Source: Podarcis melisellensis (lineage: Eukaryota). From it: a DNA stretch of 64,000 nucleotides. Made by a program: the position numbers and the translations under genes. The notes beneath the pieces were generated by a model, which worked only from the letters and a program-made list of their open reading frames with translations, had not been told where the DNA came from and did not search any database. Position 1 is the stretch's first letter; every line of letters starts with the position of its first letter. Where the stretch lies: assembly GCA_964234715.1 (NCBI GenBank), contig OZ174278.1. One strand, given 5' to 3'. Positions 27,812 to 54,990 of the stretch are shown one piece after another.

Positions 27812-28263
27812 TACATTATGCATCCCCTAGAAGGGGGATGGGAAGGAGGGGGCGATAATAGAATGAACAGTCAGCAATTGCTACAAAAGGGCTATAAGCA
27901 AGAAAGGGGGAGCTTTGGAAGGCAGTAGTTGATCTAACTCCCACCCACCCCTTTAAGTGGAAAACGCCGTTTTGAACATTTGGCACAGCCCTACTCATAA
28001 CACTACTGCTCTCAAAATAAGGGTCACTGCTTGAGATGCACACACCCTGCAGCACATTGCTTAAGTAGAGGAGGAGGAGGAGGACAGCCTCCAGCCAATC
28101 ACACCAATTCCCTTTTTTGTTTTCATAATCTCAAGACTGTTTACTGCAGAGATGGGGATTTGCATCTGGCCAGCAGGCCAAGTTCACAAGTGGCTAACCC
28201 TTCAAGGGCCATTCTGAAGCCTGTCTCAATAGGCCAGGGTTACATTCAACGACCTTTTACTCA

Positions 28264-28330
28264 AGAGTAGACCCACTCAAATTAATGGGCGTGGCTAACT
28301 TGGGTCCATTAATTTCAGTGGGTCTACTCT
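28264..28330. repeat. Short imperfect palindrome (MITE-like hairpin)
   Basis: agagtagacccact.aaattaatgg ... ccattaattt.agtgggtctactct. Confidence 0.7.
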
Positions 28331-28439
28331 TAATAAACTTTTGCGGAACACGGTCCTTGATGTCAGGTGACTGAAGCCACGACAGCTTCTTAACAGCTTT
28401 TATTTTAATAAATTAATTCGATGGGGCTAATTCCAAGGT

Positions 28440-29480
28440 TAGTGTTTAGGATCGTAGCCTCTCTAACCGAAGCGCTAGCCCTGGTCAGGGACGCTCTCCC
28501 TGTGCAGTGCACAAGTCCCTTTTAATATTGTTCCTTATTAGAGCAGTCCCTTTAAACGACGCTTCTGGCCGTTCGGGTTAAAACCAAACCCAAGAAAACG
28601 TAATAATTATATAATCTGGTTTCCCCTCAGGAAAGAGGGAACCTCCGGGAACTGCGTCTGTTGGCCTTTTATCGTGGCGGCAACAGCCGCTAGAGGGAGA
28701 GCGAGAGCGACCTCCTCAGCTGACAACTCCGGGCAAGCTGCTAGTCGGCCAGGGCGCGGCGGAGGAAGGCGGGGCATGAAGGCAGACGCCTGAAGGAGAC
28801 TTGCCGGCCTTCGTTGTAGCGCCCCAGAGGGCTTGAACCCGGGACGCGGGTGCCGGGTTTCAGCGGCGACCACTCAGCACCCCATGCGCAAGATGCTGGC
28901 CGCGCTCTCTCGCCTGCTGCAAGGCCCGGCTGCTCACAGACCGGTGAGTGAGGCACTGGGGACGGAAGGTCGTGAGGGAAGGGCGGCGGCGGCGGCTTCT
29001 TCTCCAGTATTTGGAAGCTTGTCTCGAGGCGGGGGTGGGGTGGGGGCTGTCCTCGAGCGCCAGCTGCGAAATGACCGTTATTTCTCTCCCTCCTCCTCTG
29101 TCGGCGGGGAGGCCTCGCGAGAGGAATAGAGCGCGAGCCCCTCGGGACCGAGGCCTCGTGGCAAATTCACGCGCGCGCGTTGGTCAGGTGCAGATGGTAC
29201 AAGAGCCTCGTATTTCGCAGCGGTTGCATTTCAACGAGTGAACCTCCAGAAGCTCCTTGGGCGCCTTATTCTTCTCTTTTTCTTAATAACCCCCCCCCTC
29301 ACTGTGTCCTCCATTGCGGTGCGTGTTGTCCGTCGGCTTATCGTGGGCCCCGCAGTAGAATTCTGCCGCGTCTCTCCAGTTTCCATAGGAGTAGGGGGAT
29401 TGGGGAAAAAACCACCCACACATCTCGCAACCAGTGCGCCCCTTTGGTTTCAGGTGAGTCTAAAAAGCCGGGACGCAAAT
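28440..29480 (+). promoter_or_regulatory. CpG island / PDHA1 promoter and start of intron 1
   Basis: Sharp rise in GC and CpG around exon 1; GC box GGCGGGGC at 28768; near-BANP motif CCTCGCGAGA at 29113; no obvious TATA box. Confidence 0.85.
28884..28943 (+). CDS. PDHA1: PDHA1 exon 1 (MRKMLAALSRLLQGPAAHRP), mitochondrial presequence
   Basis: ATG in the CpG island; typical vertebrate PDHA1 N-terminus MRKMLAA; donor CCG|GTGAGT. Confidence 0.95.
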
Positions 29481-30095
29481 TTTCACTGCCCACTAGTGGC
29501 TATGGTGGCTCATTTACCAAAAGTAATGTATTCAGCCTTAACTTTGGAAGTGTATATGTACTCGATTCTGACCAAACGAAGCCTCTTCTATTTGTGTCCC
29601 TGGCTTTTTAGACTTCTCTACCCATGTATTATCTGAAACCAAAGAGGCACATTGGGAGCCAGATGTGAAATATATCAGCATTAATTTCAGCTCCCCAGCC
29701 CCACTAATGTTACCCAAGCATAGAAGACAGGTGTCTCTGCTCTTCTGTTGCTGCTTAATTAACGTGCAAAAAGAATGAACGGGAGGAAGAACCGCATTAC
29801 AGGACTGCCATAAATCATTATCTCAACTGAAACAGCGTTCTCCTCTCCTGTCACAAGTATATAATACTGTACTAGACTGCACTGCAGGGCTGTTGTAATC
29901 TCTCTCCCCCCCTCTCTCTCCCCCCTCTCTCTCTCTCTCTGCTTCAGCCCCACCCCCCACATGCAATAGAGGTCTACATTTGGACAACACTACAGGGGTC
30001 CTAAGACTGCTTAAAGCTGGGTCACACTCAACCACAGCCCTTTTCTATCTGCAGTATGGGGGCAATTGAGGCACACCACCCCAATCTCTGAGTGG

Positions 30096-30320
30096 TGTGA
30101 GGTTCCAGGCTCTTACCCATGAGGGATAGCAGACTGTGGTGTATTTATGATAGATGGTTTATTTACACATATATACATCCTAAGCCTATGATGGGGGTGT
30201 TGACAGCATTAACACCCCAAGAAGGTCTTTTTTCTCCCATAGCCACAGCCTTGAAATCAAGCATGTCTCTCTCTCTCTCTCAAAGGTTTCAGTCTGCTTC
30301 TTCCCCCTGCTTCTAGCTTA
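30096..30320 (-). mobile_element. LTR-like repeat fragment (copy 2, PDHA1 intron 1)
   Basis: Shares tgtgagg.tccagg, atggtttatttacaca and ccatagccacagccttg with copy 1. Confidence 0.5.
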
Positions 30321-31840
30321 CACACACAACTCAGCTCTGGCTTTTGTCTTTTTCTAGGGCACTATCAGTGAATTGAGGGAAATGGATATACTGGTGCTTA
30401 ATTCCAGCTACGTTAAAATCTTGGATTTCTCCATTGATTTATATGAGGACATAATAGAACTTATTTACTGCTTATTGCTACATGTCTCTCTAATACAGTA
30501 CTCTTGCTGTCATCCAGCCTCACAGCTCACTAGAATGCCAGGCAATATTGTGGGCTCCATACTACACAGGCGTGCTCTTATCCCAGCCCTTCTCTTGTCA
30601 TTCCACAGTGAGCCTCAACAGGATCACCTACTCTATCCATTAGGAAGTCCCCTAAAGCATTCAGGAATCTTATCAGCCTCCATAAGCCTCTGTGATTCCC
30701 CCACCACTGCAATGGGAAATAGCTGCTCTGACACACACACACACACACACCCCACATATTTTCAGACCACCCCTCACCCCACTTGGGACAAAAGTCAAGT
30801 CAAGGGTATATCCTGCTGTGCATGTCAAGCTGGTAACAAGCTGATACAGTCCCTGGAAGTTATGAAATCTGAACTGGTCCCAGACTAGCCTCAGCATGGA
30901 TGTTGAAGTCAATCAGGATCATGGTTTGCTCAAGAGTACCTTTGTCAGGGAGGCTTTCCTTATCTATCTCAGTTCCTTTACAATTCACTGTAAACCTCTA
31001 CCTACTTAGCTAGGAGCAAGTGCCATTGCTGTTTCTGACTAAGCACGTAATGTTTATAATTCACTTTCCCCACCCATAATACAGAAGACAAGATAATCTA
31101 ATTATTTTACTGTACTTCTGAGCTTTGGCATACCATAACGTACCAATCAGGCCAATCATTGTACTTACTTACAGATGTGCAATTTGCACATGTAACACAA
31201 TGAGAATAGGTACTCAAATAGTGCTCAACATTTTAATACATATGCAATCTGGGTGGGTTTTCTTTCCTGCCAGAAGTTTACAATGGGGTTTTGCTTTGAA
31301 TAATGCACACTCTAGATGTCAGTTTTATACTTGGCAACAAGTTCTAAACTACGTAAAGGTTACAAAGGAATTTTTCCTTAGATTCCTTTATCTTCTAGCA
31401 ACCCAACATGTGGAAGCTTTGGCTAAAGGATTCTTCACACATCATGACTTACTTGCACAAGATGCATTTCTGTGTTGTAGTTTGCTTGTAATGTAGATGA
31501 TCACAAAGAGAGACAGTATTGCATAGGTGTTGTATGCAGTTGTATGCAATACTTTTAAAGCAATAAGAGACACCTCTTATTGCTTTAAAAGTATTGGCCT
31601 TTATTCTGTTGAACTGGCATACTACAAAATTAGATTAACATTTTCAAGTCTATTTTTCAATCTGTTTCACATAGAGAAGAATCCATTGCTGAATAAAAGT
31701 AAATAGGCCTAATTAAAAACAAGAATTAAAATTTGATGCTCCTAATTGGTTCATGGGGAATATTTTCCCCAAGATTTGTGATAGTATCTGACATAATTTT
31801 CTGTTTTGTTTCCCCACCCACCCCAATTCTGCTGCTCTAG

Positions 31841-31855
31841 GGAGCTGTTAGTGAG
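31841..31855 (+). CDS. PDHA1: Candidate PDHA1 15-nt alternative microexon (GAVSE)
   Basis: Pyrimidine tract followed by ctgctgctctag|GGAGCTGTTAGTGAG|gtaaga; phase 0-0 and frame-preserving between exons 1 and 2. Confidence 0.75.
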
Positions 31856-34800
31856 GTAAGACCCACACGATTATATTAATTGTATGTTCTTTCTGCATAC
31901 ATAATTTGATAAAGGAAAAAAAAAGTTCTGCCTGTCATTCTGACTAGTTTTCTTTTTGTGTTCACATGCAACACTAATCCAAGAAGCATTGTTTATCTGT
32001 AAGCAGCTTATACGCTTACAAATATATTTACATATTTGTATATGGTGCTGTTGGACTTCCTCCTGCAGTCAGTCCAGCCAGTGTGACCCGTGGTTGGGAA
32101 TGGTGGGAGCTGTTGTCAAAACAACCTCTGGAGGGCCACAGATTCTTATCCCTGTAATAAAGTTTTTTACTGCATCTCCATATTATTAATTCTTTGGAGG
32201 GGACAGTGGTGGAGTGGGGAATAAGATAAATAAACAATAAACAAACCACCTACATTTAGTGTAGGAAGTGTTAACTTGATATGGCATTTCTGTTATGCAC
32301 TGCTGAATTGTTCAGTGAGGATTTTTTTCTTAATTATTCTTTAACTGTTTTTCTTTCAACATTGTGAAGTGTGTTATAGTTTTATACCATCCTGGAATGA
32401 ATGGTGGTTAAGAACTGTACAGTAATAATACTAGTTATGTTCTAGTGCATGCAGCTTGAGCATTTCCTCTTCTTGAGTGGGGACAAATCATAAAGAATAG
32501 TTTCAAACCAGCGCTTATTATTCTCTGCAAGTCAGAATCAAAAAGCAAGATTTATTTTTGGCTTAGGAGAAATAAATCATGAATGCTAGTTTAGACATAA
32601 TGCTGTGCCAGCTGGACACTGCCTCACTTTGCATAAATGTCACTTTATATTTTTTTAAAAAAAGTTCTTTCCCTACCACAGAGGAAAACCTTAAGAATGG
32701 CTACCATAGAAACTAATTGGGGATTGTTAAAATATACAAGCAATCCTGTAGCTATTAAATATTTCTGGTTAGCCTATTGAAAAAGGTCCTACACTTCATG
32801 AAATCATAAAGCAATATTTTTTTACCACTCCAAAGAAGGTGTTACGACCTCCCTTAAATTCCTCATAATGGTTCCTGTAGTCATATGTTCTGCTGTCATT
32901 TAGTTATGGCTGTGTAAAAGGGGTGGCTAAATTGGGGCTGTCCATATGTTATTGAGACTCTCAGTTCTCATGAGCCAGCATGGGCAATGTGTGAGCTTAG
33001 GAATAATAGTCCAGTGGTATCTAGAGGACTGCATGCTAGTGACCCCTGCTGTACAACTGATTGTAAAAAACTCGACTCTCTACCTATCCTGCGTAGACAT
33101 TACATGGCATGAGGATCACTGCCAATCATTGTTTGCATTTATATGTCGTAACACAGCTATAATTGGCGGGAGCACTGGGAATAATATATATTGCATAGTT
33201 CCCTAAATTCTGTACAATATTTAAAGAAGGGAAGAATATTACCTATTCTAGCGTGTCCAGCTTTGTTCCTTAATTCTTCTTCCCATCTATACCAATTATG
33301 CAAATAGAACAGTGACACCTACTGCTATAATATACCTAGTAAACAGTGCTTGTTTGCTGCTATGATATGCCTCTCTTATTTCAAATTCCTCCAGGCCCCT
33401 GGATTTTCCTACTCCAGTTTTTCCTCTGTGTCTATCCTCATGCTTTTGCTATTCATCTTTGATTCCTTGTGACTAGTTCCTTCCTTTAATTTTGAATTAT
33501 GGTTAGTTTAGTATTGTATTTAGACAGTTATGTGAACATCTTTGAACAGAAATCTGTATGAAATGTGGTATACTGTATAAATGAACTGACTACGACTATG
33601 ACCTAATATACAAAAAATACTTACTGCAACTTAAATAGTGCAGTTGCCTGCAGACTGAATTTCCTAAACACGAACTTAAAACACAAAAGCCAACACATTT
33701 AATTATTTACCCTTATTTTATTTGTGACATGTTTATTTCTTCCTTTATGGAGATCTAGTTAGCTTATGTTGTTTTTTCCACTCTTCCATGTGAATCTCAC
33801 CAAAAGATTACGCTGACTGATGGAGACTAGTCCAAGATTACCCAGGGCACTTTATGCCTGAGTGGAAATTTAAATCCAGGTTTCCCCAGTTTTAGTCCAA
33901 CACTCACCACTACACCACCAGTACTCTCACACAACACCAGCTGGGGCTTATTAATAAATTACCTATGTCGAGTACGCATCTTGTCGTATGATGACCAGTG
34001 TAATTGGTTTAGTGACCAGTTCTTTCTACCCTGCTCCAGCACCATATACAGCAGGGGTGACTAACCCCTGGAGGGTTCTTTTGTGGACTTTTAAAAAAAG
34101 AAATTAAAAACCTCTCTGCTTTTATGAGTGTGCGCTGTGGTGCCAATGGGTTTTTTTGGCTGTCCAAGGCCCCCAATTGGTTCATTTTAAAAAGAAAGAT
34201 TATTTAAATATAAATTAAGGGTGGTTTTTTAATACATTTTTTAAATTAACAGTACCTACAAGTACCACTGTGTGTCAAAAGGATCCACTAAAATCTATCT
34301 TTTCTTCTTTGTCTTTTAAAATTAAATTTGCTGTGCCCACTTTGACATGTAGGCTCTGAAGGGTTGACTATGAGTCAATGCCGCCCTTGTCATGAAAAAG
34401 ATTTGCTGTCCTTGCTATTCCACTTTTTTCCCTTAACCATAAGTCCTCTCTCTTTCCTGCCCACTTCTTTAAAAAGCTCAAGCGAGGCGTGTGACTTATT
34501 CCTCTGTTGCACAGGATGTCATTCTCTCTTCTGCATTAAGGGTTGCCAGATTTTTATTTGAATCTGAGCACTGAAACACTGGCGTTTGAAAAAAGTAACA
34601 TCCTTTTTTAAACATGATAATGATCTAGCATAATGGAACAAACAGATGGGAAATTTTGGGCAGAGCATGGATTAGGCGGAGAATATATTCTTTGTTGGGA
34701 AAGGATCAAAGGGCTTTCACCCTGCTTGCTCTGACTTTTCCATCATGGCCAGCAGAGCATACGGAGTTTGTGCACCTGTGCCCATGTGTGGAGTGAGGTC

Positions 34801-35083
34801 ACAGAGCAGCTTGTTTGAACCTTAGCTGTTCAGTGGTTGTAAGCATATATGTTTAAACTTTTATATGGTTTTAGAAGTGTGACAAGATCATACAGGATGA
34901 TACTTGATGTTTAATTCCTTTGCATGTAGAAACATCGTTTCTGGAGCATAGATTGCAGTCTGCAATCATGTCAACTGTGTTGTATGTTGAAGTTGGAATC
35001 TTCTCTATATTGTGAAGGCATGAACATCTTTAAAAAACAAAAGTGCCTTAAACTAACAGCCATCTTTTTATTATCTTTAAAAG

Positions 35084-35152
35084 GTTGCCCGTGTAGTTGT
35101 TGCATCTCGTAATTATGCAGATTTTGCAAGTGAGGCTACATTTGAAATTAAG
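35084..35152 (+). CDS. PDHA1: PDHA1 exon 2 (VARVVVASRNYADFASEATFEIK)
   Basis: aag| acceptor and AAG|GTAAGC donor; contains the R-3-type presequence cleavage motif SRNY/A. Confidence 0.93.
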
Positions 35153-35391
35153 GTAAGCAACTTGATTACTTTTAAAAATGCTAATGTATATAGTGTTTCT
35201 TACATAATTTATAATTTAAAAGTCAGTAAGATGTAGACAAGGGATGTAGACAAGGTACTCATTCAGGGCGACCACTTATGCTCTGGACCCTTGCCCCTCG
35301 TGGCTGATAAAAACTAGCAGGGAAAGGACATCTGGCTGGGCTAAGGAAGTGCTTAATGCCTCCTTGTGAGAGGGGGCAGCCCCTGCCTTTA

Positions 35392-36033
35392 ATTATTTTT
35401 ATTATTTATTATTTATACCCTGCCCATCTGGCTGGGTTTCTCCAGCCACTCTGGGCAGCTTCCAACAAAATATTAAAATACAATAATCTGTTAAACATTA
35501 AAAGCTTCCCTAAACAGGGCTGCCTTCAGATGTCTTCTAAAAGTATGGTAGTTGTTTTTCTCTTTGACATCTGGTGGAAGGGTGTTCCACAGGGCGAGTG
35601 CCACTGCCGAGAAGGCCCTCTGTCTGGTTCCCTGTAACTTGGCTTCTCGTAGTGAGGGAACCACCAGAAGGCCCTCAGCACTGGACCTCAGTGTCCATGC
35701 AGAATGATGGGGGTGGAGACATTCCTTCAGGTATACTGAAGGCCATTTAGGGCTTTAAAGGTCAGCACCAACACTTTGAATTGTGCTCGGAAACGTACTG
35801 GGATCCAATGTAGGTCTTTCAACTGCTGTTACGTGGTCTCGGTGGCCGTTCCCGGTCACCTGTCTAGCTGCCGCATTCTGGATTAGTTGTAGTTTCCGGG
35901 TCACCTTAAAAGGTAGCCCCACATAGAGCGCATTGCAATAGTGCAAGCGAGAGATAACTAGAGCATGCACCACTCTGGCGAGACAGTCTGCGGGCAGGTA
36001 GGGTCTCAGCCTGCGTACCAGATGGAGCTGGTA
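35392..36033 (-). mobile_element. L2-type LINE 3' end
   Basis: ORF 35755..35973 VHALVISRLHYCNALYVGLP...QNAAAR is the typical L2-clade RT C-terminal motif; AT-rich tail at 35392. Confidence 0.85.
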
Positions 36034-36515
36034 AAGAAGAAGGCAGTGCTAAAAAGAAACCCTCCTTGGAATGGGAAAATCTAAGTTACTACCAGCCAAT
36101 TGCTAATATCATGTTCTTAGGCATGATTCTTGGGTGGTTGGTTGCAGACCAGATTCAAATGCTCTTGGAGAAAACTGATTTTCTAGATCCATTTCAATCA
36201 GGGTTTGGGCACAGAAACTGCTATGGTCAACGTATAATAACTTATGTCGGGAGAGAAACAGGGGAAATGTATCCATGTTAATTCTTCTTGACTTCTCAGT
36301 GGCTTTGATGCCACCAGCCATGGTATTCTTCTGTGCAGCTGTCCAAGTTGGGGGTGGGTGGCACTGTTTTGCAGTTGTTCTGGTCCTACTTGTCTATGCT
36401 CTGGTAACCTCTAGGTTAGAGTACTGCAACACATACATAGGGCTGCCTCTGAAGACGGTTTGGAAACTTCAGCTGGTGTAGAATTCAGCAGCCAGGTTAC
36501 TCACTGGGACAAGTA

Positions 36516-37540
36516 CCGTATTTTTCGCACCATAGGACACACCGGACAATAGGATGCACCTTGTTTTAGAGGGGGGAGAACAAGAAAAAAAAATTCTCTC
36601 CCTCTCTGCCCAGCGCCCCTTCAGCGAAGCGGCAGGAGGCGCTGCACAGAGAGGGGGAGAATTACCCCCCCTTGTTTTCCCCCTCTAAAACAAGGTGCCG
36701 TTTAAGGTGCGTTCAGACGCCTTCAGGCAGCTACCTTAGAAGCCTGGAGAGCGAGAGGGGTCGGTGCACACTGACCCCTCTCACTCTCCAGGCTTCAGGT
36801 TCCTTTCGACCTGCTCTTTGGGGCTGGCAGGGGGAAGCCCACCACCAGCCCCAAAGAGCAGGTCGGGGAGCAGCGGAAAGGCGTGCGGCTATAGAGGTTC
36901 CTGCCATAGCCGCATGTCACCTCTCCAGCCGGGAGAGGGTCGCGGGGGCTTCTTTAGTCCCGTGCGCGCTCTCCCGGCTGGAGAGGTGGCGCGTGGCTAT
37001 AGAGGCTCCTGCCATAGCTGCGTGTCACCTCTCCAGCCGGGAGAGGGTCGCTGGGGGCTTCTTTAGCCCCGCGCGCACTCTCCCAGCTGGAGAGGTGGCG
37101 CGCGGCTATAGAGGCTCCTGCCATAGCTGCGTGTCACCTCTCCAGCCGGGAAAGGGTCGCTGGGGGCTTCTTTAGCCCCACGCGCGCTCTCTCAGCTGGA
37201 GAGGTGGCGCGCGGCTATAGAGGCTCCTGCCATAGCCGCATGTCACCTCTCCAGCTGGGAGAGGGTCGCGGGGGGAGCCCTGTGCGTGCTCTCCCAGCTG
37301 GAGAGGTGGCGTGCAGCTATAGAGGTTCCTGCCATAGCCGCATGTCACCTCTCCAGCCGGGAGAGGGTTGCGGGGGGGGGGCTTCTTTAGCCCCGTGCGC
37401 GCTCTCCCGGCTGGAGAGGTGGCGCGCGGCTATAGAGGCTCCTGCCATAGCTGCGTGTCACCTCTCCAGCCGGGAGAGGGTCGCAGGGCTATGCTGTCTT
37501 CGCTCCATAGGACGCACACACATTTCCCCCTTCATTTTTG
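36516..37540. mobile_element. Tc1/mariner (Tc2-like) MITE with internal minisatellite; distal TIR missing
   Basis: TA|CCGTATTTTTCGC start; subterminal sequence shared with intact copy 63032-63377. Confidence 0.8.
36880..37490. repeat. GC-rich ~109-bp tandem repeat (~5.6 units), each unit palindromic
   Basis: TATAGAGG recurs at 36890, 36998, 37107, 37216, 37318 and 37431. Confidence 0.95.
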
Positions 37541-38794
37541 AGCATATTACACTGATCCTAGCATGACTGCACTGGCTGCCAGTTAGTTTCTGAGCCCAAT
37601 TCAAAGTGCTAGTTTTCATCTCTAAAACCTTAAATGTCTCTGGACAGCAATACATCAAGGTCTACATCTCTCATATGAACCTACCTGGACCCTCAGGTCA
37701 TCATCTGAAGCCCTTCTTTGTGTGCTTCCTCTGTGAGAGGTCCGGAGGGTGTAGTAACATGAGAACAGGCCTCTTCTGCAGTAGCTCCCCGTTTGTGGAA
37801 CGCTCTGCCTATGGAGATTTGGCTGGTACCTTCATTATCCACCTCTAGGTGCGAGGTGCTCTTCAACCAGACATTGGACTGATTAACATCCCATACCCCT
37901 TTAAATGTTTTTGTGGAACGAGGTGTGGGGAGGAAGGTTTATTGGTTAGTAGTTTTCTGTTCTTGTTTTTATCATGTATGTTTTGTTTTTATATTGTGAA
38001 CTGCCCTGAGAGCTACTAATTCAATCAATCAATCAATCAATCAATAATGTAAGGCTACTTACAACACTCAAAGCAGTTTACAGGAAATATGTTTGCTGTT
38101 TCACAAAAAACTCCAATATCATGACAAAATACAATCAAATCATATTACTGTGCTATTCAAGTATTGTCTTTCACACTGAAATAGGCTTGGATTTTTAAAC
38201 ATTTTTTTTAAAAAAGCATGACTTCCCCAGGCCCTGATTTTCTTATACTGTAAATATATAAATCGTAGATCACAAATCTTTTTCGACCCATGGACACATT
38301 TTGATTTTAGAGTGAGTGCTATAGACACCCCTCACCTTTCCCCAGCAGTCACTACTTTCCATCAGATACACACACGAACACATATATGTACAAAGAAAGA
38401 ATGAATAGCACACATTTATACTTCATCTTTCCAGGGGATCTGTGTAAAAGTTAGATCCAGGATAATTAATCTGAGGTCTGAAAAGCGCATAAAGCTGAAA
38501 GAGGAAATGGAAAAGTACATCACTCTTCCAACTTCCTGCTTCAGCTCTGTATACTTTTCAAAGGAGCAAAAGTTAACCACTCTCATTGGATGCCAAGGAA
38601 AGACCTCAAAGGCATCATGGTGCCCACAGGATCAATACCCATTTTTTATAGCACAGATTTTAATTACATTTAAAGCAAGTAGTTATTGCCATACTTTGCC
38701 AATACCAAAAATTAATTACATATTTTGTAAGGAAATAGTTTCTGTGGTCTGCCCTGTTTATCAGTTTGTTGGATGATAGTTCTGTCCCGTGTCA

Positions 38795-38900
38795 GCAAGA
38801 TTTCCCTTGGTTTATCTACCTTTTCCACCTCCTGCATAGATTTATAAATCGTTGTCATGTCCCCCATTAAGTCTCCCGTTCCCCTGAGCAGAAGAGGCCC
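38795..38900 (-). mobile_element. CR1 LINE 3' fragment
   Basis: Peptide LMGDMTTIYKSMQEVEKVDK resembles the CR1 ORF2 C-terminal LRGDMIEVYKIM motif. Confidence 0.55.
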
Positions 38901-39248
38901 AAATATTTTCCCCTTTCCTTGAAGGTACTCTAATCCTAGAAACAGGTTAGGATTGCCCTGCTTATCAAGCATCTTAAGAGAATTGGAGGTCCCAGTCAGT
39001 GAAGTTACTAGCTTTTAGCATGGTGGTTCCAGACCACCTACCAACTATGTCTTTATGCTCTGTGATACTTTCATGCTAGAGCCTTGGCCACATGGGCACA
39101 GTAGGCAAAGGCAGGGGAAATATGGAGTAGTATTAGCTAAGAACGTGTTACTCTGATTTTCTTCAGGACTAGTCTGCAACCAGTAAGATTAAATAATCAT
39201 TTTGATATGGGAACCCCCCCCCTGACTTTTTTATCTTATTTCTCCCAG

Positions 39249-39422
39249 AAACATGATCTCCATCGCTTGGAGGAAGGACCGCCCACCACAGCTGTTTTGA
39301 CTCGAGAGCAGGGTCTGCAATATTACAAAACTATGCAGACTATTCGACGCATGGAATTGAAAGCAGACCAGTTGTATAAACAGAAAATTATTCGAGGCTT
39401 TTGTCATTTATATGATGGTCAG
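39249..39422 (+). CDS. PDHA1: PDHA1 exon 3 ([12 protein letters not shown]...[10 protein letters not shown])
   Basis: Within ORF 39207..39434; AG/GT boundaries; 174 nt. Confidence 0.97.
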
Positions 39423-40739
39423 GTATGTGCCTAAGAGACTTTATGCTCAAGACCTCTAGGTTTTTGTCGTCTTCTTCATTTTAATGAAGGCTTTTATAGG
39501 GCAGGGTGTGCATGAAGAAATTGCATGTCTCCACTCTCCCATACAGAGAATTAAAAGTACTTGCAAAAACAGAGAATGAAGAGGTCTTCCATCATGGCAG
39601 CTGCATTTGTAGTTCCTCCCATGCTAGTACTTTGTGGATCCTCACAGAGTATTGATGAAGTTTCCTTCAAAAGAATTCCAGCAATTTTAGCCCTGTCAAG
39701 TTACACCTACTTCTGAAATAATTAGACCAGATCACATTGTGACCCAGCTGTAGGTGAGCCAGTGGCCCTCCAGATGTGACTGTACCATCTTTGACCATTG
39801 GTCTTTCTGGCTTGGACTGATGGGAGTTGGACTAAAACAAAACCTGAAGAGCCATGGGTTTTCCACAGAACTATAGTTTTTCTTTCTGGTGTTTCTTGCT
39901 CTGCTTTTGTATCTCTACAGAGGACCAGATATTAGCACTAAATAGATTAAATAACTGGCTGAACTGGGTCAGTTGATAGGTTTTAATTAAGTAAGCAAGC
40001 AAGCAAGCATATGTTTACGTCCATTCTCCTGATTTGTATTACTTTTGACCATAGACATAGCAGATGTAATGTGAAACTATATTTCACATTGTACCAGCTT
40101 GCTGTTTAAGAGTAGTGTATAACAAACTCTTCTCCATCTGTTGGAACTAAAGTTAGAACTAAAGTGAATGATTAATCTGTGCATTACAGCTATATTCAGT
40201 AGTTTGTTCACAGCAATAGTAATGAGCAAAGGAACATCTGCTATTCTTTGAAAGATCTACACCTGCCATGTTATATGAAGAGTCTGTGCGCACACACACC
40301 CCATCTCCCCAAGAAGGGCCAGGTAGGATAGGAACTGGTTGAGCCCTGCCAGTGATGCTTCCCTAGTTTTCCTCCAGGGAGGGCCTCCAGGCAGTGGTAT
40401 CCAACCCCCAACCATCTTTCCTGCTCTGGTGGAAATATTTCCTGGACAGTGTTTCATAATATCATGCACACACACTTAAATATCACTCTTTTTTCATATT
40501 CTCCACTAAAACCTGAAGATCCTTCATTGCCAGCATTTGACTATGGCATCATGTAACATATTATGCATATGTTGTTGTGACAGTAATCTTCCCTAGGTAG
40601 TCTTTGTTTATGTTTCTTCAGTTCCTGAACTGAGGTGGAGCTGCAGGTACAAGGTTGGTATACTGTTCTTCATTTTATTACTTGCCTGTGGACAATGGCA
40701 CATTGCACACTGTTTTCAGGCATGTTTTCTTCACCATAG

Positions 40740-40883
<144 letters not shown>

Positions 40884-40940
40884 TGATATGTAAACAGGAA
40901 AAGGAATGGGATTATGTAGCATGTATAGTGCATAGATAAA

Positions 40941-41303
40941 GGGACACAGGTGGCGCTGTGGGTTAAAGCCTCAGCGCCTAGGACTTGCCGATCTAAAGGT
41001 CGGCGGTTCGAATCCCTGCTGCGGGGTGCGCTCCCGCTGCTCGGTCCCAGCGCCTGCCAACCTAGCAGTTCGAAAGCACCTCCGGGTGCAAGTAGATAAA
41101 TAGGGACCGCTTACCAGCGGGAAGGTAAACGGCGTTTCCGTGTGCAGCTCTGGCTCGCCAGAGCAGCGATGTCACACTGGCCACGTGACCCGGAAGAGTC
41201 TCCGGACAGCGCTGGCCCCTGGCCTCTTAAGTGAGATGGGCGCACAACCCCAGAGTCTGTCAAGACTGGCCCGTACGGGCAGGGGTATCTTTATCTTTAC
41301 CTT
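40941..41303 (+). mobile_element. Full-length Sauria SINE in PDHA1 intron 4
   Basis: tRNA-like head, (ACCTTT)-type tail, perfect 14-bp TSD tatagtgcatagat (40924 and 41304), many CpGs retained. Confidence 0.95.
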
Positions 41304-41703
41304 TATAGTGCATAGATGGAGGGGGGTTTAGGTTCAATTATTATCTCAACAATGAAACCTAGTAGGACTTTGCTGAATTGCAACACACATATTCTACTCT
41401 TCTTCCAAGGAGCAGTAGGCTGGTTCATACCTGCATGTACAGCTTTTGTTTCTCTACACTTGATTCAAATTTACCAGTGCACTAAATTCTTGTGCTGGGA
41501 TGCCTACCATAAGTTAGCATGTGCTGTAAATGTGTCCCTTCCTAAGAACATGAGTTTTGATGAAACTCTAACCTTTATTATTCTGTAATCATCTTAAAAT
41601 CCATCCAATTAGCGAGTTTGAGGTCGGGGGGGGCTTCATCTTAATCTTATTGTCTTAGTAGACACCAGATCACATGGTAAAGATCCATTTTTAATCATTT
41701 CAG

Positions 41704-41795
41704 GTCGGGTTGGTGGGTGCGCTAAAGGCAAAGGAGGCTCAATGCATATGTATGCCAAAAACTTCTATGGTGGTAACGGTATTGTTGGAGCCCAG
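41704..41795 (+). CDS. PDHA1: PDHA1 exon 5 ([16 protein letters not shown]...GIVGAQ)
   Basis: GKGGSMH motif; AG/GT boundaries; 92 nt. Confidence 0.97.
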
Positions 41796-42329
41796 GTAAG
41801 GCTCACCGATAAAAACAATATTTTTCTTTGGAAAGAGACTATATGTTGCTTTTAATCTGGGCCATAACCTAATTCATATATAGTTAGGTGTATTAGCCCA
41901 GTGACTTTAGTGTACTTAAATATGTCCAGTTTATGCTGGAAGCCCAGTTCTGGCTCTAGTATTTCTTCCATGTAAATCTAACACAGCTCAAATTTCATCC
42001 ATTCCTGGATAGAACTAATTAGCTAGGCCCATTTCAGTTTGGCATCTAGCCTGAGCTAGAAACTGAAAAAGGCTTGGTAGTCTTGATGAATGATTTTCAG
42101 TGGGAGAGAGTCAGGTGAATGTAACCCTGTTAATTCTGCTGGGTGTCTCGTCAGGGGTTTTTTATACCATTGTCCACAGTATCCTTCCATATTAAGTGCC
42201 AGGGATGAGAACTGGAATTGTAGTGTTTCTCTTCTCAAGTAGTATCTTATCATATGGTTCATTATTGTTGGCTGCTGATCATTATCTTTGTTTGTTTTGA
42301 CTACCTTTGCATGTTGCAATTCATTGTAG

Positions 42330-42455
<126 letters not shown>

Positions 42456-42771
42456 TAATTAAGAGTCACATAAGTGGAAAGGAGATTTCAATTTTCAATT
42501 TCATTGTTCTGCAAGGGACAATGACAATAAAGATATCGTTATTGAGATGTAAATGCTATGGATCATGCATGATAAGTCCAGTTTTGTGCAAAGTGAAATG
42601 AAACTGCCCAAGTTGTTCTCCCAGCTATCGGGGGGGGGGGGGAGGAGCACAGAAGCCCAAGGCTCACCAGTTTGTTCCTCCTTGGTCTAGTGAACATTCA
42701 CTGTATGTGTAATTCAAGGCTGATGGCTACATGAGAGAACTGAAAGTGTACCAAACCTTTTATTCTTCTAG

Positions 42772-42951
<180 letters not shown>

Positions 42952-43034
42952 TGAAAGTTATACTGTGTCCATTCAAGGAAGTTCAACTTTATTCTTAAAT
43001 GTAATTGGCTTTTTCTTTTTTAAAAAATCAACAG

Positions 43035-43106
43035 GTTGATGGCATGGATGTTCTTGCTGTAAGGGAAGCAACAAAATTTGCTGCTGACCACTGCAGATCA
43101 GGAAAA
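43035..43106 (+). CDS. PDHA1: PDHA1 exon 8 ([24 protein letters not shown])
   Basis: AG/GT boundaries; 72 nt. Confidence 0.97.
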
Positions 43107-43473
43107 GTAAGTTATGCTTTGTGTGTGTGGCGGGCCTCTCCTGCTTTACCAATTATGTAAGTATAGCTGAGGTTTTCAAGTTAGAAATATTACTATTTTA
43201 TTTCACAAAATGTATACCCAAAACACAGGGTTTAGAAGGTTCTCTATAATTACCTTGTGAACCCCAAAGCAACCTTCAAAAAAATCCCAGTGTTTATTGA
43301 GTTAATAATGGAATAGGAAAGAGATAGTCTGTGGCCCTCTGAAGCAAGCTGATCTTAAACAGCCCTAAAATACATGCACACAATTGATTGAGATTAGTTG
43401 TCATGACGTCTTATCAGCAATTTTTTGTCACTATTTTAAAGTTATTAACACCTCTGAATTTTAATTTTGTCAG

Positions 43474-43541
43474 GGTCCTGTTGTGATGGAGCTACAGACA
43501 TATCGTTATCATGGACATAGCATGAGTGATCCTGGAGTCAG
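43474..43541 (+). CDS. PDHA1: PDHA1 exon 9 ([23 protein letters not shown])
   Basis: PDK phosphorylation loop (sites 1 and 2); AG/GT boundaries; 68 nt. Confidence 0.97.
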
Positions 43542-45296
43542 GTATTTCTCTCTGTATTACAAACGGTTCCTCTCTAGATAGTATAGGGGAAATAGCTGTA
43601 TGTTCAAATGTCCCCTTGTTTTCCGTCTATATCTTCTACATTTTCTGTTAGTAGATCAGTAGTCTCCTCTTACAACCCTATTGTTGGCTTTTTAACAGAT
43701 ATCAAGGGCATGTTGGCCCTTTGTGGCTAGTTTTATTATTTATTCAAAGCAATATCTGAAGAATGATTGACTGTACAAGTAACAACAAATCATTATCTCC
43801 TGTTGAGAGGAAATATAAGCTTTGCACTTATACCCTTCCTCTGTTGAATAGCTATAGCCTGCAAACCGTGTATTTTGGTGTGTGTGCTTCACAGTGGCAA
43901 GCTTTGCTTCTGGTTTAGGATCCTAGATTGTGTGTAAACTGGTTTGTTATGCAAGAGGTTGCACAAAGGGAAAAAGAAGATGGAGCATATAAGCCCTTGG
44001 CTTGTGTCTGGTCATACTAATAATAGCAAACTATGATTTGCTATTACATCTGAATACAACCATTCTAAAAAAATAATGACAGTACCCAAATTTTATGAGG
44101 CAAATGTGAAAAATACCCAAGAAACTTGTTTCCATTATCTTGCTTTTATTTTGTGTGCTTCATTATGGTTAACAGCTACCTACAGGAACATAGATATCTG
44201 GGCTAACACTGAGGCAGGGCATTGGTTCCATCTAGCTCCATAGTGGCTGCACTGGCTGGCAGCACCTCCCCAGATTTTCAGGTGTGTCTCTCCCAGCTCT
44301 ACAAGGTTATGCTGGGTAGTGAACCTGTGACCTTGTGCTTGTAAAGTAGATGTGCTACCATTCAGTTATAGCACTTTCCTGAAGGGGACCTAAAAAACTA
44401 AAACTGCAAGCTGGTATGATATGCCATTTAATGTAGGCAAATATCTGGTAAAAGGTTTTAAGTAAGCATATGCTTAATTTTGTTCTATTCCTAATTACAT
44501 CTGCTATGCCCATTTCCCTTTTTTGTATTGCTTTTAATTCTTCACAGTATGTTTGAACGAAGGTGAAAACTCTTAAACTCAACTTTATAAATTCAAATGC
44601 ATGTTATAAAATAGTACATAGAAAATATATCTAAGAGTAGCAGTACTTAAGGACTGTTTGTTTAATTGATATACTGTGGTTCTAAAATAGTTTGCCATGA
44701 AATGAAATTTGCCTAAAGTCTCTCATGAGTACTCACTGAAAGAGGAGCTGCTTCCTCTCCCTCCCTGCCCCACAATCAGGAGGGAGAGCTGGTGGTCCTA
44801 TCCCACATTTGTGTATCATGTGTGATAGCAGTAAATGCACTTGGTGCTAAGAACTATCTGCTGTTAGTGGCGCCCTGCCCAGAGCTGTGATGCAGAGGTA
44901 CAAGGAGTATGCTCTTTGAAGGTTGATAGTTCTTACTCAGTATTTGATTTTTAGAGTGAAATGTGCATTTAATTTTTAGTTCTGGAAAAAAGTATACTGA
45001 AACAATAATACATATTTGAAATGCTTAGGCCACTACACGCTGCCAGCTCATATGCTTGTTTTACCTTGTGGCTTACTCCCCTCATTAAAGAAATATAGCC
45101 AAGAGGAGCAGTCTGCTTTGGTGATTAGCAGATGTAAAAACTGCTCCTGAAAGCTCTCCTCTATTACTTGTCATGCCTGTTGGCGAATACCTGACTTGCC
45201 TCCGTATACTGTTGCAGTAAGAGTACCAGTTCTTGGCAGAAACAGTTATTGCAAACAGTTCAGCAGTCTGCTACATTGTCTCGTCTTTTTTTACAG

Positions 45297-45405
45297 TTAC
45301 CGAACGAGGGAAGAAATTCAAGAAGTGAGAAGCAAAAGTGATCCCATTACACTTTTGAAGGACAGAATGGTGAACAACAACTTGGCTAGTGTGGAAGAGC
45401 TAAAG
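45297..45405 (+). CDS. PDHA1: PDHA1 exon 10 ([17 protein letters not shown]...VEELK)
   Basis: Within ORF 45196..45462; AG/GT boundaries; 109 nt. Confidence 0.97.
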
Positions 45406-46297
45406 GTAATAAACCTTCATTTCAAATTTGATGAAAATCATTTTACAAAAGTAGATCAATAGGAAGTCTTCACCTCAAATCAGTTACAGCAAGCCAGAAT
45501 TGGTATAGGATATATCCTGTGGGGTACATGGCAGAATTTTTAATTTTACCTAATCATTGTTCTTTTAGCTATAGAAAACAATTTAAAGATTAAATAGTTT
45601 TATTTAAACTACCAAATTATCTTCAACTGAGAAGGGGTATATGATTATTGTAAATTTGGGAAACACTGCTATTTTGGTACAGGGGCCTATATTGCCTAGT
45701 GAAACATGGCAGTTTCCTCAGGGAATGACATTTGCACAGCCATTGCCTTCTCATATTTATAACCCGACTTTCTGAGGAGTCATGGTATATGGGATTTGTC
45801 ACAGTTGGCCCTTCCATCAACCCTGCTGGTTTAGGTTGAGGAAGATTTTAAATTGGGATTCTGCTAGTCACTACAGCTGAAATCGTTTGCTGCAGCAACA
45901 GGGTTAGTGGATTTGCTAGGAGAGTCCCAGGTCTGTTGCCAAAGTGGAAATAAAGAGTGAGGATCATTGATGAGCATGATTGGTCATACATCTCTGTCAG
46001 CATGGGAGATGTGTTCTGCTCTGCTCTAATCTATAGCTTATGAAAACATGCCATGTCCTGCTACAGTTGGTAACTTGTAAGTTATTTTAGTAGTTTGCTG
46101 GCTAGTTGTTTGAATATAAAAAGGTAAAACATTCCATGTACAGCATACATGTGAGAACTGCTTATCAGGATTTCATCTTAGGGAGGGCAGAAACTCTTTA
46201 AACGCAACTGTGGCTTAAATGTTTCCAGATTTACTTTGAACCCCAACATGTACTACAGAGGTAAATAGTACTCTGAGGTTTTATAATGATTGATCTA

Positions 46298-46654
46298 CAG
46301 TGGTGCCTCGCAAGACGAAATTAATCCGTTCCGTAAGGCTCTTCGTATAGCGGTTTTTTTCATCTTGCAAAGCAAGCCCATTGACAGCTTAGCGGATTAG
46401 CGCTACAGCTGTCAAGCGGCTTCCAGCGATCAGCTGTTAAGCGGCTTATCAGTGGAACAGCTGATAAGCGGCTTAGCGGCTTAAGAAAAGGGCGAAAAAA
46501 GCGGAAAAAACCCGCGGGGGGATGCAAGATTTTTTTCGTCTTGCGAAGCAACCCCATAGGGGAATTCGTTTTGCGAAGCGCCTCCAAAACAGAAAACCCT
46601 TTCGTCTAGCGGGTTTTTCGTCTTGCGAGGCGTTCGTCTTGCGGGGCACCACTG
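46298..46654. mobile_element. Tc1/mariner(pogo)-type MITE in PDHA1 intron 10
   Basis: 22-bp TIR cagtggtgcctcgcaagacgaa (one mismatch); TA flanks; CpG-rich. Confidence 0.88.
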
Positions 46655-46712
46655 TATTAGGAATCTGTGGAGTCTTTTGTTTCCATTAACAATGTTTCCC
46701 CTTTTCATACAG

Positions 46713-46877
46713 GAAATAGATGTGGAAGTAAGGAAAGAGATTGAAGACGCAGCACAGTTTGCCACAACTGATCCTGAACCACCTCTGGAAGAACTAGGCA
46801 ATTATATCTACTATAAGGAGCCACCCTTTGAGGTGCGTGGCCCAAATCAGTGGATTAGATATAAATCTGTGGGCTAA
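46713..46877 (+). CDS. PDHA1: PDHA1 exon 11, last coding exon ([16 protein letters not shown]...WIRYKSVG*)
   Basis: Acceptor catacag|; ends at TAA 46875-46877. Confidence 0.97.
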
Positions 46878-48414: not shown

Positions 48415-49268
48415 CTATTAAATAAAAGAGGAGTCAGACTTGGGTATGACATAACATTTCCCCCTTAAAATGTTTCATGATAGTAGTACACTTTTAATGA
48501 CAACAAAACCTAGTTCTGCAACACAAGTATTTTGGTGAATCTGATACTTATATTTTAGTTGTAGTATAGCTTGGTATGTCTAAAGCACATGTAAAAGTGT
48601 ATCTCATCATATGAATTAACTCAAAACAAATCCTACATATCTTTGAATTACTGGCTACCTGGTAGCCTTGATTTTCAAATGCTCTCCAATGTAGATTTCT
48701 GTGCTGAAATGGTTCCTAGAATTTCTACTTAACCCCAGGCTTCATAATTAAATATTCCAGCACTATCAGCGTGTTACTTGCTGCTGCTATAGTGATAGAA
48801 AACCACAATACAGACGGTCAGGCTATATGAAAGGAATTTTATACACACTTTCCGTCAGTGTTGGCTAAAGTAAGTGCTGCTCTCAAAGCATACATGTTAT
48901 AGTTCTCCCTGTAAAGTCACCCTAGAACATTTAGGACACATTTTACATTTACATTTGTAACATGGAAAGGTAATATTTAGCCTGAAATAGAGACACTGCA
49001 CATGGAGTGCCGCTCGGGGGGGGGGAGGGGCGAGGAAAAGACATGATACAGCCCTCAGCACTGAACAATTGGGTTTTCTAGAAATCTAGAAGAAAGAACC
49101 TGAGTACCAAATTAACTCTGTATAAACCAAGAGTAGCTTAACTGGCTACATTTTAAAATCTAGCCAATAACCAATGTAGGCTCATCTGATTGCCTGAAGG
49201 TGTTTTATAAACTAGCGATGATCAGTAAAATGGCTGAATAAGCCTGAGCACACTTTAAAGCTGTTAAC

Positions 49269-49479
49269 CTGTTTGTTTCTTGCTTAAGCTTGCCCAGCTG
49301 CAAGCTGAGCTGCTGCTGAGTGTCAGGGGTCACAGAAGACGTGAGCATGCACACTCCAGATGTGATAACTGTTTCTTCGTGTGTCTTTTGCTGCACTTGC
49401 TGGTAATCCTCATCTACTTCATCTGCATCTTTGTCAACTCCTTCAGTCTCTGATGCTGGTTCAAAGTGAGCTCGAAGTT
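49269..49479 (-). CDS. MAP3K15: MAP3K15 exon (LRAHFEPASETEG...LKQETNR)
   Basis: Within ORF 49205..49516; 211 nt; phases fit. Confidence 0.92.
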
Positions 49480-50000
49480 CTGCACAGAGCAAAAGAGAAT
49501 TGCAGAGGTCAAGCATTTCTTACATTTGCCACTTAAATATCATCTAGTCAGCAAGCTTTTTCTAAGTATATATATCTTTTTAAATAAAATGCAGCTGTCC
49601 TTCCTAGTCCCATTTCAGAAAATACTGGTGCCTAGGGAGTTCCTTGATTTTAAGAAATGACAAACTAATAATGGGCTAATGTGTGGCAGCCTTTCAAAAG
49701 AACAATTAGTGAAGATTTGTAGTGAATGTTTCTGTCCAGACTAATATTCACAAATGTGCTAGTCTGTAAAGCATGTTTAACAAAAAAATTCAGTTCAAAA
49801 AATCAGAACTTGTTTTATGAAAGAACTGGCAGCCATTTACAACTTTTCGCCAAGGAAAGACCGAAGTACTACTGCAGTTCCAGCACACCAGCAGTACCCA
49901 CCCTGGGGCACTCATTCCACAGGTTAGACATTTATTATTGCTTTGCTCACATCATATTTAACCATCCCACTTAGCAGTTTACTACTTTGCTTTTACTTAC

Positions 50001-50106
50001 CTGGAATGAGAATAGTGACAGCAGCTTGAACAGCACGTCGTATTATATTATCCATAGCAAACATCCAATGAGGTCTGATTAAATGATTCCTTAGTACTTT
50101 GTTAAC
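50001..50106 (-). CDS. MAP3K15: MAP3K15 exon ([35 protein letters not shown])
   Basis: Conserved ASK PHWMFA motif; AG/GT boundaries; 106 nt. Confidence 0.95.
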
Positions 50107-50864
50107 CTATAAGAAAAGTGTCAAATAAAACAGGGTAGTAGTTTGCCTTAAGCTATAAGCTTGTCATTTAGAACAAGAAGTTTGGGTAAATGTAGGATGA
50201 CAATAAGTCCACGTGGATTAAGAGCTAGAACACATATTGGAACATAAAAGCAGCCCTGCTGGATCAGACCAAAGGCCCACCTAGTCCAGTATCCTGTTTC
50301 TCACAGTGGCCAACCAGATGCCCAGGGGAAGCCCCCAAACAGGGCATGAGTGAAGCTGTAGCCCAGTGACTGGTATTCAGAGCCATGCTGCCTCTGATCC
50401 TGAAGGGATACAGCCTTTGTTTCCACTGTGATATAGACACAAAGAAAGCTATTGCAAAGCAACACGTAAGGTACTGTGTTGTACATCAACAATGCACAGA
50501 TATTCGACTAAGTCATACTCGGAGCAGACCCCCTGAGGTATCACACTGTGCTTCAAGTTCTTTGCACAGAATTGTGCATTGTATGCTATATTCCAAAGGC
50601 TTTCTAGAAAGCAAAAGAGGAGCTCATTTCTACAATTGAGCAGAAGTGAATAAATACATCTTCTCTGGTCAGCAGGTCAGCTGCTCCATATGATATTCTA
50701 CAACTCCTTTGTCCTCTTTTGCTCTCCTCCCAATAGTATAATTTTAGTATAATTTAGTATAATAAATAGTATAATTTTAGGGTTTTAAGTTTAAATAGCA
50801 GCAAAAGGTATTGGGTGGTGGGTCCCTCCCCCCACCCTCAGATATTACACTCGGATGAACATAC

Positions 50865-51050
50865 TGCATCTTGAAATCCAAACAACACTAGATGAATCTG
50901 ATTGATGGAAGTACTGTCAAAGTCCAGTTCAATTTTCAACTTGGATATAGTTGATGCCATAACTCTGTGTTCAGGAGAACGTATGAAATCTCTTAAAATC
51001 CCAATTATCTGCTTGATATGAGCAACTGAAAGGTGCAGTTCTTCAGAACT
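50865..51050 (-). CDS. MAP3K15: MAP3K15 exon (SSEELHLSVAHIKQII...LFGFQDA)
   Basis: Within ORF 50838..51125; 186 nt. Confidence 0.94.
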
Positions 51051-51804
51051 CTGAAAAAAAGATGAATATGCAAAATGTTTAAAAAGGCACATCAGCAAAC
51101 TCCACCAATGTATGTATGTATGCATGTTTTCAACCTTGCTGTCACTATTCTGGAAGACTCATTTTTACCAATTCGCAGCAAGAGCAGCAGAGGGCAGCTT
51201 TCAATCAGGCACATCACAAGTGGTTTGATTCATGGATTACATTAGCTCACGAGAGAGGAAACAGAACATGAGCTAAATTCAACACTGATGTAATCAAACT
51301 GCAGGACTGAATTTGTCCTACCAGAGAGCAGCTTTCTGCCATTCAGTCCTTAAGCAAAAATTCATATTACAATCTCTTAATACCATGGGAAAGGGGTGGC
51401 TAAAACAAAAATTGGTTGCAGAGGTCAAGGCAACAAACAAGGCGGTCAACAAACTTTAGGTGACCAGTTAAATAATAAGCAGCTCCATTTTACTACTTAA
51501 AGGTTGTGATGGACCCCTCTTTGCTTCTCCGTGTTTGTAATCTCTACACAATTTTGTGGAAGAGGAAGTTAGGATGAACAGACTTGCCCCTGTCTCTTCC
51601 AGGGTTGTGCTTATAATCCAAGCCAGAGGCCAGCTATCCACAGCACGGATCCTGCTTTCTTCATGCAGGTTCCTCGAGTGATTTGGAACCCTACATGATG
51701 AGCGCAGCAGGCTCTTCACCCCAGACACCCTCCAGATCATGGAGTAGGAAAGGTGGTAGAGCAATAATTTTTACCTCTTCCAAACAAGTGAATAGTCGTA
51801 TTAC

Positions 51805-51979
51805 CTGTGCTACACATTCTCTTAAATTGGAAGCTACTTGGTTTTGCTCTTCCTTGAGGATTTTATACAGAATTGCACGTCGTTCGCTGTCCTTTCGTAG
51901 CAAGAAAAGACCAGAATCCCGTTCCTCAAGTGAAGGGGAAGCGCTTCGCTCATCTGAAATGGAGCTGTCGTCGGGAACA
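51805..51979 (-). CDS. MAP3K15: MAP3K15 exon (VPDDSS...GLFLLRKDSERRAIL...CVAQ)
   Basis: Within ORF 51691..52005; 175 nt. Confidence 0.94.

Positions 51980-54943: not shown

Positions 54944-54946
<3 letters not shown>

Positions 54947-54988
<42 letters not shown>
54947..54988. repeat. (GT)n microsatellite
   Basis: About 21 perfect units. Confidence 0.95.

Positions 54989-54990
<2 letters not shown>

Follow-up and report, generated by a model that had tools for sequence, protein, structure and literature searches.

A microexon in intron 1 of PDHA1

We analyzed a 64,000-nucleotide (nt) stretch of Podarcis melisellensis contig OZ174278.1 (hereafter, the window), which carries the complete PDHA1 gene, encoding the pyruvate dehydrogenase (PDH) subunit E1 alpha, on its + strand. 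The 11 canonical exons are intact; a tblastn search with the 399-residue protein P0292 placed all of them colinearly on the window, which contains no N stretches. Within intron 1 lies a 15-nt unit in the context TAG/GGAGCTGTTAGTGAG/GTAAGA, which inserts the residues GAVSE after residue 20 of the precursor. This unit is, very probably, an evolutionarily old and genuine PDHA1 coding microexon, effectively exon 2 of 12, which four related lizards carry in their predominant mRNA contig and which places GAVSE in the mitochondrial presequence. It qualifies as a conserved vertebrate coding microexon in all features tested. The exon is already included in public gene models, among them isoform X1 of a close relative, and is thus known as an object, whereas the literature and supplements that we searched on microexons, PDHA1 splicing, and presequence import do not mention it.

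The unit has the form expected of a microexon: it is 15 nt long (the usual limit being 27 nt), its length is a multiple of three, and it is bordered by canonical AG and GT. A preliminary description of the window had proposed this unit from the sequence, and all of its coordinates hold, namely those of CTGAC, the pyrimidine tract, TGCTGC, the acceptor, the exon, the donor, and the exon junctions, as does the phase (0-0). However, the splice-flanked 15-nt pattern by itself is within chance expectation, and its reality rests on other evidence. The pattern YAG/N15/GTRAG occurs five times on the + strand of the 64 kb, and three of these occurrences are open in frame, including one at the start of the last PDHA1 exon (46713). 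Additionally, intron 1 contains four other splice-site-flanked units of in-frame length, two of which are without stop codons.

We investigated splicing in 18 transcriptome-sized contig sets from relatives (organisms A–D) that carry the PDHA1 3' end. Four runs (X1, X10, X13, and X18; one per organism, from three studies) were aligned on positions 29200–35199. The type of these runs was guessed as RNA, as none is labeled RNA, and they bear no tissue labels. The exon-1 side of the junction was read from the 30-letter overhang consensus of the contigs. Each of the four runs had a contig on exon 2 whose upstream overhang read through the final 17 nt of exon 1 into GGAGCTGTTAGTG, i.e., exon 1 fused to the microexon. 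These contigs continued downstream into exon 3 in four of four runs, and the transcript order in them is exon 1, microexon, exon 2, and exon 3. Their alignments begin at 35082 and not at 35084, because the AG that ends the microexon equals the acceptor AG. The depths of the exon-2 contigs were 140 (X1), 92 (X13), and 119 (X18), with only a bin depth (approximately 77) for X10, and the inclusion-form contigs had the highest contig depths seen on the stretch. Since they are spliced across three introns, the contigs are derived from complementary DNA (cDNA). The skipped form was absent among the loose ends listed for the four runs, but contigs drop minor variants, and this absence is hence uninformative on skipping. 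In addition, run X10 contained low-depth unspliced contigs across most of intron 1; one of them (31599–31983) differs from the window by 12 substitutions, and none of the 11 listed falls within 31822–31864.

We next to this compared the window with the genes, including introns, of nine database proteins, anchoring the ten genomes at the splice sites. AG/exon/GTAAG was found in all ten, comprising squamates, a bird, a turtle-like sauropsid, a marsupial-like mammal, two frogs, and a teleost, and the alignment across vertebrates suggested in the preliminary description thus shows the exon and its splice sites to be kept from teleost to marsupial-like mammal. The microexon DNA is identical in two lizards, the rattlesnake, the gecko, and the turtle-like sauropsid; the manakin has one synonymous change and the marsupial-like mammal one replacement (Val to Ala). 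Among the amniotes, identity to the majority was 98% in the exon, 93% at +1 to +6, and 84% at −20 to −1, compared with 51–54% beyond approximately 40 nt on either side. For reference, the PDHA1 locus of P0292 (L001) shares 91–95% DNA identity with the window. The exon is therefore orthologous and conserved across vertebrate classes; its length is 15 nt in the sauropsids, frogs, and marsupial-like mammals, compared with 21 nt in the teleosts. Its age would exceed 400 million years if the teleost–tetrapod split has the date that we take it to have. Because of the spliced contigs in four runs and the conservation in ten vertebrate genomes, we regard the microexon as real, and the claim of a genuine in-frame presequence microexon that adds one Glu is upheld.

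The flanking signals are also conserved. The block upstream of the exon approximates CCAAYUGCUGCUAYYUAG. As the preliminary description had pointed out, UGC is present between the pyrimidine tract and the acceptor, and it recurs within −20 to −4 in 10/10 species (at −8 to −14), against a background of 16–28% of YAG sites in the same loci. The AG-free zone upstream of the microexon spans 56 nt in the window and 44–80 nt across species; this is not distinctive alone, because the zones of six other PDHA1 acceptors span 20–87 nt. Every one of the seven amniote sequences has YTNAY, as a motif match only, at −42 to −50, with no AG between it and the acceptor. The donor GAG/GTAAG is invariant in all ten species and matches the consensus at 8/9 positions. 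The features are listed in Table 1.

Table 1. Features of the PDHA1 gene in the window
Feature	Position	Strand	Basis or remark
PDHA1 exon 1, coding part MRKMLAALSRLLQGPAAHRP	28884..28943	+	ATG at 28884; full-codon end ..AHRP; donor GTGAGT next
Branch-point-like CTGAC, A at −50 from exon start	31788..31792	+	Motif match only
Pyrimidine-rich tract, 79% C+T over −45..−4	31797..31829	+	Sequence
UGCUGC, with UGC at −11 and at −8 from exon	31830..31835	+	Sequence; conservation in 10/10 species
3' splice site AG	31839..31840	+	Sequence, spliced contigs, cross-species DNA
15-nt coding microexon GGAGCTGTTAGTGAG = GAVSE, phase 0-0	31841..31855	+	Spliced contigs, DNA conservation, annotated proteins
5' splice site GTAAGA	31856..31861	+	GAG/GTAAG same in all ten species
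PDHA1 exon 2 VARVVVASRNYADFASEATFEIK, starts VARVVVASRNYADF, through ..FEIK	35084..35152	+	Predicted cleavage site after SRN, and mature N-terminus
PDHA1 exons 3–11	39249..46877	+	Colinear with P0292 (related lizard, isoform X1, 399 residues)

Among the remaining exons, exon 3 (39249–39422) matches PF00676-type E1 alpha proteins, and the final exon starts at 46713, with its last sense codon ending at 46874 and the stop codon TAA at 46875–46877. The region around exon 1 (28001–32000) is a CpG-rich promoter region with 99 CpG per 4 kb, compared with 18–56 in most 4-kb bins; one further bin (36001–40000) is CpG-rich, with 89 CpG. Intron 1 also contains two segments (30065–30194 and 29450–29680) that are matched by 34–60 nt pieces of many unrelated high-depth contigs in all four runs, with 90–95% identity. 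These matches probably represent an interspersed repeat transcribed elsewhere, outside the PDHA1 mRNA. A G+C-rich tandem repeat (109-nt unit, 5.6 copies, 87% matching) occupies 36880–37488 in intron 2 and gives rise to long spurious open frames there. Tail to tail with PDHA1, exons of an ASK-family MAP3K lie on the minus strand at approximately 49200–61420, with matches to Pkinase (PF00069) and to PF20302, the HisK-N-like globin domain of the ASK signalosome. In mammals, the gene adjoining PDHA1 is MAP3K15.

Occurrence in annotated PDHA1 proteins

We searched exon 3 against a representative protein library, followed the matches with database proteins as queries and with cluster member lists, and compared the N-termini. 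The library is clustered at 90% identity and the isoform that represents a cluster is arbitrary; presence of the microexon is therefore informative, whereas absence in a single row is not. GAVSE was found in the squamate proteins P0292 (isoform X1), P0279, P0286, P0272 (Agkistrodon), and P0293 (gecko X1). The presequence of P0292 (399 residues) is identical to that of the window through ..ASRNYADFASEA, and the first difference comes later in exon 2 (T/S). The same five residues occur in the turtle-like sauropsids P0261 and P0298 and in birds (P0267 from Anser, P0268, P0295 from Pipridae, P0297 from Columba, P0314, and P0321), which confirms the statement in the preliminary description that avian PDHA1 has such a segment. 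Frogs have GAASE (P0213 and P0283), GAAGE (P0304), or, in Xenopus laevis, GAANE (P0275 and P0325), and marsupial-like mammals have GAASE (P0306 and P0328); a search with P0306 gave only three matches, one being the other marsupial-like GAASE protein. At this junction, teleosts carry seven residues (GAQTVSE, GAELVSE, GAQAVSE, or GAQVVSE), as seen in P0179 (from a Logan assembly), P0189, P0201, P0203, P0237, P0248, and others.

Forms that skip the microexon are also annotated. In squamates, they are P0282 (a 394-residue X2 model), P0263 (gecko X2), and the snake proteins P0290 and P0291, and further skip forms occur in several birds, in frogs (P0198, P0228, and P0324), and in teleosts. Isoforms with and without the microexon are both annotated in many species, in agreement with the proposal that it can be included or skipped in frame, and the inclusion form is named X1 in most of them. 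Of two UniProt entries from pit vipers, P0272 (Agkistrodon) contains the exon and P0291 (Crotalus adamanteus) does not; we presume that both derive from venom-gland transcriptomes, an origin that would count against a neural, retinal, or endocrine switch. The microexon is absent from the 390-residue eutherian forms seen (P0302 and P0307), as expected from the earlier suggestion that canonical human PDHA1 lacks the insert. It is likewise absent from the shark, chimaera, sturgeon, and paddlefish representatives seen. A simple pattern search of intron 1 in Callorhinchus found no AG/G..E/GT unit of 12–24 nt, although the search was crude and absence is unproven.

Several annotated proteins are notable in other ways. 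The 395-residue eutherian model P0299 has an unrelated insert, VRQPG, between exons 1 and 2, which may represent another cryptic exon or the remnant of a decayed microexon. P0305, a 390-residue eutherian "PDHA1-like" protein, is encoded by an intronless 1173-nt gene (L010), a processed retrocopy. In P0309 and P0319 (385 residues, X3; a bird/turtle-like cluster), an alternative first exon, MMQSLP, is joined directly to GAVSE; if these models are real, they represent a PDHA1 form without the usual targeting helix and N-terminal presequence. The frog isoform X1 P0323 (408 residues) has an extra 8-residue insert, VFGFLLVK, between exon 1 and GAASE. Furthermore, many teleost pdha1a/pdha1b isoforms (430–730 residues; P0014, P0154, P0160, P0163, P0200, P0205, P0222, P0245, P0259, and others) contain a further large alternative exon that directly follows exon 1 or the microexon. 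At its start, a conserved LLIDLSEYVSLTS / LQLLAVQSEYANLT motif precedes a long stretch rich in proline; the exon sits between the targeting helix and the cleavage region and is kept across many fish orders.

Consequence for the presequence and possible regulation

Exon 1 encodes a basic amphipathic start (..KMLAALSRLLQ..), with the maximum helical moment at residues 3–13 in a simple calculation, and exon 2 supplies ..VVVASRN/YADF.., with Arg at −2 of the predicted cut. The ..SRN/(F/Y)A.. motif with this Arg is conserved among the PDHA1 proteins compared. Without the microexon, the presequence has 30 residues (6 K+R, 0 D+E; net charge +6); with it, the presequence has 35 residues (6 K+R, 1 E; net charge +5), one Gly and one Glu being added. 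It thus has the traits of a cleavable matrix-targeting presequence, i.e., positive charge, few or no acidic residues, and an amphipathic helix. By homology with the human protein, the lizard precursor would be cleaved after SRN; we take the human presequence to have 29 residues and the mature human protein to begin with FANDATFEIK. Solved human E1 alpha chains of 365 residues begin 14 residues before the exon-3 lysine, which agrees with a short tag preceding a mature end that lies approximately 10 residues upstream of exon 3. A structure search with exon 2 alone (23 residues) returned no matches. On this homology, the microexon would lie wholly inside the removed presequence, approximately 10 residues upstream of the cut.

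How such an exon is recognized and what it does can be outlined as follows. An exon of 15 nt is too short for ordinary exon definition. It is probably recognized through the invariant strong donor GAG/GTAAG, a lengthened 3' region (a distal branch point approximately 42–50 nt upstream and a long pyrimidine tract), and the conserved UGC-containing block just before the AG, a layout as in SRRM3/4-type microexons. The five residues would belong to the linker that joins the amphipathic helix (..LSRLL..) to the cleavage site (..SRN/Y..). As GAVSE is upstream of the predicted cut, it would be removed after import, leaving mature E1 alpha the same in both forms, and the precursor alone would differ (35- vs. 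30-residue presequence). The likely effect would be a change in how efficiently or how fast the precursor is imported and processed.

The cis elements resemble those described for microexons that depend on SRRM3 and SRRM4. UGC is found between the branch point and the AG in 74–79% of SRRM3/4 microexons, where it is facilitating and not strictly required (bioRxiv 10.1101/2024.09.17.613571), and the predicted branch point of such microexons is more distant from the acceptor in human and chick (median 45–47 vs. 34 nt; bioRxiv 10.64898/2026.01.16.699960). The PDHA1 unit has UGC before the AG, an extended branch point distance (with the branch point assigned by motif), and a strong 5' splice site. 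It therefore has the cis-architecture of the SRRM3/4 class, but we do not assign it to that class, of which the two defining functional traits, enrichment in neural, retinal, or endocrine tissue and a response to these factors, are putative here.

Which explanation best accounts for the unit was weighed against these data. A chance 15-mer flanked by splice sites in an intron, with no true exon, is conceivable given five occurrences of the pattern in 64 kb; this candidate was ruled out by the spliced contigs of four species, the ten-genome conservation, and the annotated proteins, and its probability is practically nil. Given a true exon, the question is how its inclusion is controlled. The preliminary description had favored a tissue-regulated switch, which in its specific form would be neural, retinal, or endocrine, driven by SRRM3/SRRM4 via UGC, with the exon skipped elsewhere and E1 alpha import tuned in those tissues. 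The UGC at −8 to −14 in every species, far above background, agrees with such a switch, as do the long AG-free zone, the distal branch-point-like motif, and the strong donor, all of which match reported SRRM3/4 microexons, and the wide annotation of isoforms with and without the exon. However, all four bulk runs, from four species, gave inclusion contigs at top depths and would all need a neural or endocrine origin; this dominant inclusion argues against a rare tissue-restricted form. Moreover, approximately one in four ordinary YAG sites likewise has a UGC close by, and the microexon literature and supplements searched hold no PDHA1 entry. We thus consider this switch unlikely.

Conversely, the exon may be effectively constitutive in sauropsids, with the annotated skip forms reflecting minor splicing noise or homology-driven models and no regulated switch. 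The inclusion form as the only one seen among the contigs listed for the four runs, its strong donor and long pyrimidine tract, and the naming of inclusion forms as X1 in most species all fit this explanation. Skip forms, however, recur in independent annotations (gecko X2, Crotalus X2, several birds, frogs, and teleosts), one of them being the UniProt entry of Crotalus adamanteus, and strong conservation at synonymous positions and in the upstream intron, as seen here, typifies regulated and not constitutive exons. We regard constitutive inclusion as possible, without favoring it. Regulation by other factors, such as MBNL/CELF-type proteins acting on YGCY (UGCU) or PTBP acting on the long upstream pyrimidine tract, would predict a developmental or a muscle/heart pattern. 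UGCUGCU contains two UGCU, and the seven amniote sequences and that of Scleropages all have UGCU or UGCC, but the two frog sequences keep UGC without YGCY (UGCG), and conserved GCAUG (RBFOX) is absent within 300 nt of the microexon; this explanation is very unlikely. Taken as a whole, the data lead us to describe the exon as broadly included in sauropsids yet skippable, with only a low probability that it depends on SRRM3/4. The fullest version, in which a regulated switch older than 400 million years is read by SRRM3/4 via UGC, alters E1 alpha import or processing by cell type, and was lost in eutherians, strikes us as quite improbable.

Some points weigh against our interpretation of a conserved microexon that modifies the presequence. 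The runs are tissue-unlabeled and their contigs lose rare variants, so that some skipping may occur in these samples; the RNA nature of the runs is also only a guess, and it is the splicing across three introns that suggests cDNA. Some annotated skip isoforms may have been built from cross-species protein evidence and not from RNA. The UGC block also holds YGCY (UGCU), the motif of other splicing regulators. As for the protein, the predicted cleavage site is taken from the human protein, and an effect of GAVSE on import or processing is putative.

Significance and comparison with known systems

Presequences usually evolve fast, since what counts in them is general traits such as charge and amphipathicity. 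In PDHA1, a five-residue insert that is presumably discarded has remained almost unchanged, down to its synonymous positions and 20 nt of upstream intron, from teleosts to marsupial-like mammals. Such conservation indicates selection on something other than the mature enzyme, and candidates are the kinetics of import and processing, precursor stability, and regulated splicing itself. Pyruvate enters the tricarboxylic acid (TCA) cycle under the control of PDH E1 alpha, and given this role, even a modest change in precursor supply could matter physiologically. If a regulated switch were true, a splicing program would be tied directly to pyruvate entry into the TCA cycle. The apparent absence in eutherians offers a natural contrast. 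We find the strength and age of this conservation in a cleaved targeting peptide, together with the apparent eutherian loss, mildly surprising. The structure of the microexon is ordinary for a conserved microexon, and its value lies in a clear testable question and not in a new kind of element.

Among known systems, SRRM3/SRRM4 (eMIC) microexons are exemplified by those of protrudin/ZFYVE27 (PMC5247714) and TAF1 (PMC6948980). Like these, the PDHA1 microexon is at most 27 nt long and in frame, is deeply conserved in vertebrates, and has UGC between the tract and the AG, a long distance from branch point to AG, and a strong donor. Unlike them, it is predominantly included in four bulk runs, and its insert lies in a cleaved targeting peptide, whereas eMIC inserts lie on a protein interaction surface. 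In addition, the eMIC program has been defined largely in human and mouse, whereas the eutherian forms of 390 residues that we saw are without the PDHA1 microexon. Canonical eutherian PDHA1 (390 residues, with a 29-residue presequence) shares the exon 1/exon 2 junction and the ..SRN/(F/Y)A.. region, but those forms have no insert.

The closest counterparts are within PDHA1 itself. Isoform X1 of squamates, birds, turtles, and frogs (XP_053243089.1 = P0292, XP_048349061.1 = P0293, XP_039213147.1 = P0286, and XP_027594051.1 = P0295) has the same exon at the same position encoding GAVSE (GAASE/GAANE in frogs). We found no structural difference from these annotated forms; the database entries are predictions in which the insert bears no functional annotation. 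The 21-nt version of teleost pdha1a/pdha1b is two codons longer, and many of its isoforms then add the proline-rich alternative exon, which is missing in tetrapods. It nevertheless shares with the lizard microexon the same position, the GA..(V)SE frame, the AG/..GAG/GTAAG ends, and the upstream UGC (L009).

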